From Pavona decussata (Eukaryota), in the NCBI GenBank assembly GCA_977016875.1, contig CDRNST010000013.1, forward strand, positions 1,116,001 to 1,180,000: a stretch of 64,000 bases of DNA, read 5' to 3'. The notes beneath the pieces are model-generated. The model saw nothing but the letters and a program-made list of their open reading frames with translations, was not told where the DNA came from and ran no database searches. The translations under genes were made by a program, and so were the position numbers. Positions 28,308 to 28,688 of this stretch are shown one piece after another; position 1 is the stretch's first letter, and each line of letters begins with the position of its first letter.

Positions 28308-28582
28308 TGTTACTGCTGGGCTTCGCGTTTCCCAGCTGGGTCCCCTGCGCAGACATTTAGTTTCGGGCATGCGCATAGGTGGCCTTTAATGTTTACCACG
28401 AGGGCCACCGAGTTTTTACCTCAATTTTAAGTTCACTAAGGTTTATTAGTTTTCACGGTTTGTACGGCAGTTAAGTTGATTTTTATTAAGGCCCATCGGT
28501 GTAACTGGAATTGCGAGTTTGTCTCACGGTGCCTCGTGTCGAAATAAACGAAATTTACGGCTGGTTTACATTCGCATCTACA
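28308..28582 (+). repeat. 5' LTR (275 bp)
   Basis: TGTTACTG..CATCTACA; AATAAA at 28543; matches the 3' LTR except for a 3-nt indel. Confidence 0.98.
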
Positions 28583-28593
28583 GTAAAAACTCG
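28583..28593 (+). promoter_or_regulatory. Non-tRNA primer-binding site, complementary to LTR positions 28409-28419
   Basis: GTAAAAACTCG directly follows the LTR's terminal CA; no TGG there; exact reverse complement CGAGTTTTTAC lies within the LTR. Confidence 0.75.
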
Positions 28594-28688
28594 ACCTCAA
28601 GCATGGTTTGTCGATGGATGTGTGGTTTACAAGGATAAATACCGTTTACTTGGTTTTCCTATTGCAACTTTCACGGATAGTTACGGGC

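Follow-up and report, generated by a model that had tools for sequence, protein, structure and literature searches.

Evidence for self-priming in a coral BEL/Pao retrotransposon

The LTR retrotransposon described here, from the genome of a reef coral, probably uses part of its own RNA, as Tf1 does, to prime minus-strand DNA synthesis; from comparisons of the sequence with its relatives, we place the probability of this reading at roughly 0.8. A first-pass annotation of the same DNA had proposed that the element primes without a tRNA, and this proposal is supported by covariation between the two sides of the predicted primer duplex in related families, by the predicted fold of the RNA, and by the lack of a match in our searches for a host tRNA.

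Structure and classification of the element

The element spans 7,392 bp (28308-35699) of the 64-kb window, by which we mean the whole stretch of coral DNA analysed, and all features given below lie on its forward strand. The same five bases, a CAACC target-site duplication, stand beside both LTRs (28303-28307 on the left and 35700-35704 on the right). The 5' LTR is 275 bp long (28308-28582, TGTTAC...CTACA, of the TG...CA form) and the 3' LTR 278 bp (35422-35699), the sole difference between them being one 3-bp GTT indel after 28549. Between the LTRs lie a gag frame with a DUF1759 domain (28614-30926, the first in-frame ATG being at 28614) and a pol frame with RVT_1, Peptidase_A17, integrase and DUF5641 domains (30959-35254). 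A polypurine-tract-like GGGGAGCCA (35413-35421) is situated directly 5' of the 3' LTR, and a GGGGAGCCA-type motif was also found immediately 5' of the 3' LTR in relatives.

Pfam matches (PF05380 at 2e-40, PF18701 at 1e-27 and PF03564 at 1e-11, plus PF00078, PF17921 and PF00665) bore out the earlier assignment of the element to BEL/Pao. The combination of a DUF1759 gag with a pol in which Peptidase_A17, RT, RNase H and integrase follow in this order, and which has DUF5641 at its C-terminus, identifies it as a member of BEL/Pao (Belpaoviridae); the TG..CA LTRs, the short target duplication and the polypurine tract before the 3' LTR are likewise BEL/Pao features.

In the window copy, gag is not in frame with pol, the break falling between 30926 and 30959, and this copy is probably defective despite its near-identical LTRs. 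In many further copies, gag and pol form a single long frame without a break. At least 29 copies at 94-99% identity are present in the 602-Mb genome, which, together with the many long open frames, implies that the family is young, and the element is recently active. The element or a relative at ~94% identity was present in coral metatranscriptomes (assembled contigs, four runs), and its nearest named protein homologues are from Montipora and Acropora. More broadly, candidate Peptidase_A17 matches in the host genome numbered at least 1,400, with long open frames (1,700-2,170 aa) of many kinds, and BEL/Pao elements in this coral genome are extremely diverse and apparently active.

An LTR site complementary to the bases after the 5' LTR

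The 5' LTR ends at 28582 and is directly adjoined by the candidate primer binding site (PBS), GTAAAAACTCG (28583-28593), flush with the LTR end and without a TGG. The first TGG past the 5' LTR (28604-28606) is 23 nt downstream, where it overlaps an ATG (28603-28605). The exact complement of the PBS, the predicted self-primer CGAGTTTTTAC, is found at 28409-28419 in the 5' LTR, with a second copy in the 3' LTR (35523-35533) and none elsewhere in the window. Counted together, GTAAAAACTCG and CGAGTTTTTAC have three occurrences in the 64 kb, against a chance expectation of 0.04. Pairing stops at exactly 11 nt, as the twelfth position (C28408 versus A28594) is a mismatch. The element thereby shares the hallmark of Tf1-type elements, namely that a stretch of its own LTR/R complements the bases right after the 5' LTR.

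The LTR boundary, the adjoining PBS, the complement in both LTRs and the 11-nt limit of pairing had all been reported in the first-pass annotation, and its coordinates agreed with ours base for base. Its estimate of the chance of such a match (about 7e-5) is near the value that we recomputed for a flush 11-mer from the LTR's own base composition (P = 1.3e-4). When LTRs were shuffled and offsets of 0-6 nt were allowed, 1 in 1000 attained an 11-nt match. Both the LTR site and the PBS are intact in 27 of the 29 genomic copies, while the remaining two carry single uncompensated changes resembling decay. Covariation within the family was considered as a test and set aside as uninformative, given that those 27 copies are identical at both sites.

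Covariation between site and PBS across related families

Relatives were gathered as contigs encoding pol homologues of the window element, in which the LTR end was located and the bases following it were read. LTR ends were defined from the divergence of the LTR pair for the window element, L064, L065, L068, L071 and L080 (with the target duplications read as well in the window element, L065, L068 and L080), and by homology to a close relative for L063, L066 and L079. The 5' LTR of L064 contains a run of N, and the complete 3' LTR copy was used in its place. L072 and L073, which are degraded or 5'-truncated, were excluded from the comparison.

Eight further families, with 54-82% pol identity, have the same layout built from other sequences, with 10-14 nt paired. 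Given as LTR site and PBS, these are L065 (CGAGTTATTAC and GTAATAACTCG, 11 nt paired), L063 (TCGAGTTAAAAC and GTTTTAACTCGA, 12 nt, also written (T)CGAGTTAAAAC / GTTTTAACTCG(A)), L064 (AGAGATTTTAC and GTAAAATCTCT, 11 nt), L066 (AAGGTCGAAC and GTTCGACCTT, 10 nt), L068 (AAGGTTGTAC and GTACAACCTT, 10 nt), L079 (AAGGTCGTAC and GTACGACCTT, 10 nt), L071 (TAGGTCAAAC and GTTTGACCTA, 10 nt, then a G.U and one more pair) and L080 (CAAAGAGTTTTCAC and GTGAAAACTCTTTG, 14 nt).

Compensatory change between the PBS and the LTR site of relatives had been proposed as a test of the self-priming idea, and the outcome was clearly positive. Across the nine families, pairs 1, 2, 6, 8 and 9 are invariant, and the other five of the first ten pairs (3, 4, 5, 7 and 10) each occur as three Watson-Crick types. 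Not one of the 90 cells (pairs 1-10 in nine families) is mispaired, although the families are related and the independent events are therefore fewer than the cells counted. Runs of pairing between each site and its own PBS sum to 99, compared with 34 at most in any of the 133,496 possible derangements, and the site of one family pairs with the PBS of another over just 2-6 nt. Changes on both sides separate the window element from L065, from L063 and from L064, and likewise separate L066 from L068, from L079 and from L071. Paired changes specific to each family are a pattern that a host RNA cannot produce. In all nine aligned families AC terminates the putative primer and C or G comes next, and the PBS conforms to GTNNNANCTN.

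Phylogenetic distribution of the layout

A tree of pol sequences (IQ-TREE, LG+G4, quick search) united in one clade (SH-aLRT 100) the eight families with a duplex of 10-12 nt, including that of the window. The sister clade (99) comprised L080 (14 nt) and L076 (9 nt), themselves sisters (95), plus L074, L075 and L078, and L061 and L062, two ordinary BEL families of the host genome that have TGGTCCTTCGAG after the LTR, were placed on a long outgroup branch. BEL families of the host genome were sampled as six 10-kb stretches.

A lack of complementarity in relatives would, according to the first-pass annotation, have refuted the idea; the eight further families have it, and three members of the sister clade do not. 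In L074 (2968-3460), L075/L077 (one family) and L078, a GT comes right after ..ACA or ..ATA, there is again no TGG, and neither the LTR nor the rest of the element contains a complement of 8 nt or more. The LTRs of L074 are 100% identical, so this family moved recently without a detectable duplex, and the missing complement in these three families means that some other primer must exist in close kin of the window element.

More distant relatives were sought by scanning metagenome contigs, of which just those with a defined LTR end were counted; an unconstrained scan of the leader for 9-mers was too noisy. Five contigs with 48-52% pol identity (L090, L103, L104, L106 and L110) have the same layout with a complement of 9-12 nt (shuffle P between 0 and 0.04), and the site again ends in AC, then C or G. 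In four of the five, 2-4 bases intervene between the CA of the LTR and the duplex. The eleven other metagenome contigs scanned gave no convincing primer-type match. A broad BEL/Pao clade, and not one lineage alone, shares the layout.

Small palindromes were also observed in the leaders of three of these elements. L076 has a hairpin-like TTCGTAACGAA right after the 5' LTR, a TTCGTAACGAA-type palindrome directly adjoins the LTR in L103 (215-235), and a comparable palindrome, TTCG-TTT-CGAA, is present in L104 after ..CACA. These recall the 'conserved hairpin site' of GalEa copia elements (PMC6934838).

Other LTR landmarks and the predicted RNA fold

Three further landmarks of the LTR lie where the first-pass annotation had placed them. 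A TTTAAT (28385-28390), which L063 and L065 do not share, lies 19-24 nt upstream of 28409. An inverted repeat, GGTGGCC / GGCCACC (28378-28384 and 28403-28409), takes in the base with which the primer site begins and, counting G.U pairs in RNA, reaches 10 bp. L063 has an inverted repeat at the equivalent place (L063:250-293, GATGGCCCTC / GAGGGCCATC), and between it and the window element both arms are altered in a compensatory way; L065, L064 and the L066 group have either no such repeat or a different one. The repeat may represent a palindrome of the promoter or a hairpin of the RNA; were it to form in RNA, transcription would start upstream of it and the primer would exceed 11 nt. The third landmark is an AATAAA polyadenylation signal (28543-28548), with the R/U5 border expected ~10-25 nt beyond. 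L063-L068 and L071 have AATAAA or ATTAAA in the corresponding position, and in every family read one of the two stands 30-75 nt short of the LTR end. The position of this signal implies an R of ~150 nt and a short U5.

Approximately 35-45 nt upstream of the primer site, in the presumed U3, a GCGCATGCG-type palindrome (28364-28375) is conserved in the window element, L063, L064 and L065. It resembles an NRF1-type site.

Minimum free energy folds from the first base of the site to PBS+12 contained the full primer-PBS duplex in all seven families folded (the window element and six others). The whole leader was no more stable than its shuffles (z = +0.8), and the conserved feature is the long-range duplex, not a global fold. 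RNAduplex gave -14.4 kcal/mol for site and PBS (z = -3.4), the duplex being short and A/U-rich, and such energies are less specific than the flush Watson-Crick criterion.

Search for a host tRNA primer

ARAGORN detected no tRNA in the 64-kb window and four (Gln, Glu) in ~0.5 Mb of fetched loci, none of them matching the PBS. We also searched the host nuclear genome for the 11-mer in tRNA-like context. With the 11-mer beside a T-loop, there were 2 non-tRNA-like matches at the anticodon-arm distance (10 for controls) and 2 at the 3'-end distance (again 10 for controls). With an A or G before it, the 11-mer was counted 181 times outside the element versus 354 for the control, which is no enrichment. 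The TGG at 28604 was also considered as a PBS and rejected, as it has no tRNA match and is too distant from the LTR end.

As a positive control, the pattern test found 14 tRNA loci ending in GTTCGAATCCGGCTCGAAGGA in the host genome, and GTTCGAATCCGGCTCGAAGGA plus CCA is the exact complement of the PBS of L061 and L062 (TGGTCCTTCGAG). Recovery of the tRNA of these ordinary BEL families indicates that the method detects a tRNA primer when one exists. The 14 loci, presumably tRNA-Tyr, are on genome contigs C6 and C51, several of them clustered. The suspicion that no host tRNA fits the PBS was therefore upheld for nuclear genome patterns, with a control that worked. Within these searches, the PBS of the element is complementary neither to the 3' end of a host tRNA, as is usual for BEL/Pao, nor to an internal part of a tRNA, as in copia-type elements. 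Since a tRNA-type PBS is a descriptive criterion and not a phylogenetic one, membership of BEL/Pao stands on pol.

A proposed priming cycle and its alternatives

For the self-priming that we favour, the transcript would start at or near 28409, the predicted start of R, and 11 nt of the LTR (CGAGUUUUUAC), most simply the first bases of the transcript, would fold back on 28583-28593. The RNase H of the element would then cut after C28419, and the freed 3' OH would be extended into U5, which would account for the LTR end lying exactly one base ahead of the duplex. Since copying would begin with the last base of U5, the 3' end of the primer would define the LTR boundary, and a boundary-flush complement, as seen in nine families, is what a primer predicts. 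Plus-strand strong-stop synthesis may copy the still attached primer, in which case each cycle would renew the PBS from the LTR site. Such rewriting would keep the LTR site and the PBS complementary while both drift, and would explain the perfect covariation. A transcription start upstream of 28409 would still permit self-priming.

One such possibility, which we consider unlikely, is that the primer is a longer, structured 5' fragment: transcription would start upstream of 28378, the hairpin at 28378-28409 would form, and the 11-mer would be its single-stranded 3' tail, loosely like the acceptor end of a tRNA. This would fit an inverted repeat that reaches into the site by one base and differs in both arms between the window element and L063, a TATA-like box that is weak and not conserved, an ATATTAA box in L080 merely ~12 nt before the complement, and a complement whose length differs among families (9-14 nt). 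However, the repeat is not a constant companion of the site (see L065, L064 and the L066 group above), and complementarity ends sharply at 10-12 nt in eight families, as an RNA end would. A variant has the site in U3, where its 3' LTR copy on a co-packaged RNA would act, but the primer would then part U3 from the 3' R of the first strand transfer, which would presumably make the cycle much harder. It is less probable still that the duplex has been selected for cyclisation, packaging, dimerisation or control of gag translation, with another host or element RNA serving as the primer. L074, L075 and L078 lend this some credence, since they share the GT start yet have no LTR complement and so must use another primer. 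Yet the duplex starts at the first post-LTR base in nine families, a position that is meaningful for a primer and not obviously otherwise; the PBS varies by family in the same kind of host, so that a shared host RNA cannot pair with all of them; and no other complement of the PBS region was found in the element, either in the window or in its kin.

Priming at GTAAAAACTCG by a host tRNA, a tRNA half (as in copia) or a tRNA fragment, which would make the LTR copy a coincidence or a tRNA-like relic, seems very improbable. The sequence GAG-TTTTTAC-CTC does have some local likeness to an anticodon stem-loop (anticodon UUU), and half-tRNA priming is known in Ty1/copia (PMC6317226). Against this, no locus joined the 11-mer to a T-loop at either distance, matches being below controls; the 11-mer was not in excess outside the element; the control did find the tRNA of ordinary BEL families; and a host tRNA cannot explain nine PBS sequences that are each matched by their own LTR. 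As for an inverted repeat that arose by chance and has no function, the sequence is indeed short and A/T-rich, but P is ~1e-4 for the window alone, eight more families have a compensatory match and no derangement comes near the observed pairing, and we regard this explanation as already refuted.

Implications and comparison with known systems

The first 11 nt of Tf1 RNA reportedly pair with the bases after its 5' LTR, and its RNase H domain is said to free the primer, in work by Levin from 1995 and 1996 and by Lin and Levin from 1997. To our knowledge, self-priming has been shown for Tf1 only and is inferred for some Ty3/gypsy and Ty1/copia lineages. Families listed as self-priming are Tf1/Tf2, along with Cft-1, Maggy, Skippy, Boty and sushi-ichi (PMC6934838), and the mode is predicted for the Tcn1 clade of Ty3/gypsy (plant, moss) and for the TAR lineage of Ty1/copia (PMC6317226). 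Belpaoviridae are described in their ICTV profile as tRNA-primed, with a PBS of 18 nt matching tRNA-Arg or tRNA-Gly, and a large survey of BEL/Pao makes no mention of the PBS (PMC3118150). The first-pass annotation knew of no precedent in BEL/Pao, and we likewise found no report of BEL/Pao self-priming in the searchable literature, though a prior mention may exist. What we propose would be a known mechanism newly described in BEL/Pao, the third superfamily, where it is probably widespread.

Self-priming may even be the normal mode of a large, old BEL/Pao clade in cnidarians and other marine invertebrates, with the PBS rewritten in every cycle, a generalisation for which we see the balance as even. 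If it is true, all three superfamilies of LTR retrotransposons contain self-primers, which would support tRNA priming as a later trait, repeatedly gained or lost. Priming is a defining step of replication, and a BEL/Pao case backed by covariation would complete the set of superfamilies and is relevant to the question of a self-primed ancestor of LTR retroelements. There are practical consequences as well: pipelines that look for a tRNA-type PBS (LTRharvest/LTRdigest style) will miss or misfile such elements, which are abundant and young in reef-coral genomes, and the families described here are natural compensatory variants with which to approach the requirements of RT/RNase H for duplex cutting and primer use.

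The element works like Tf1 but is outside the Tf1/sushi phylogenetic family. It resembles Tf1 and sushi elements in having no tRNA-type PBS and in the short stretch of its own RNA that complements the post-LTR bases (10-14 nt and flush in the coral elements). Those elements, however, have a Ty3/gypsy pol, usually with a chromodomain integrase, whereas the coral element has BEL/Pao domains only; its host is a metazoan, and its cut and transcription start are predicted positions. Given the distance between the superfamilies, its origin would be independent of that of Tf1. The TAR lineage (Houba, Osr-1) offers a parallel in that self-priming was likewise proposed from sequence alone, in a second superfamily (PMC6317226), but it is a lineage of plant Ty1/copia elements with an unrelated pol order. 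Canonical BEL/Pao elements (Semotivirus; Tas, Pao, BEL, roo) share gene content and order, TG..CA LTRs, a 5-bp target-site duplication and the polypurine tract with the coral element and differ in their tRNA-type PBS, exemplified by TGGTCCTTCGAG in L061 and L062, a site that the self-complementary clade does not have. Lastly, copia elements primed by a half-tRNA (1/2 tRNA-Met, 1/2 tRNA-Ile) also have a PBS that does not start with TGG and a primer whose 3' end is internal to an RNA; in contrast, the copia PBS matches a host tRNA and is constant in its lineage, while the coral PBS matches, and varies with, the LTR of its own element.
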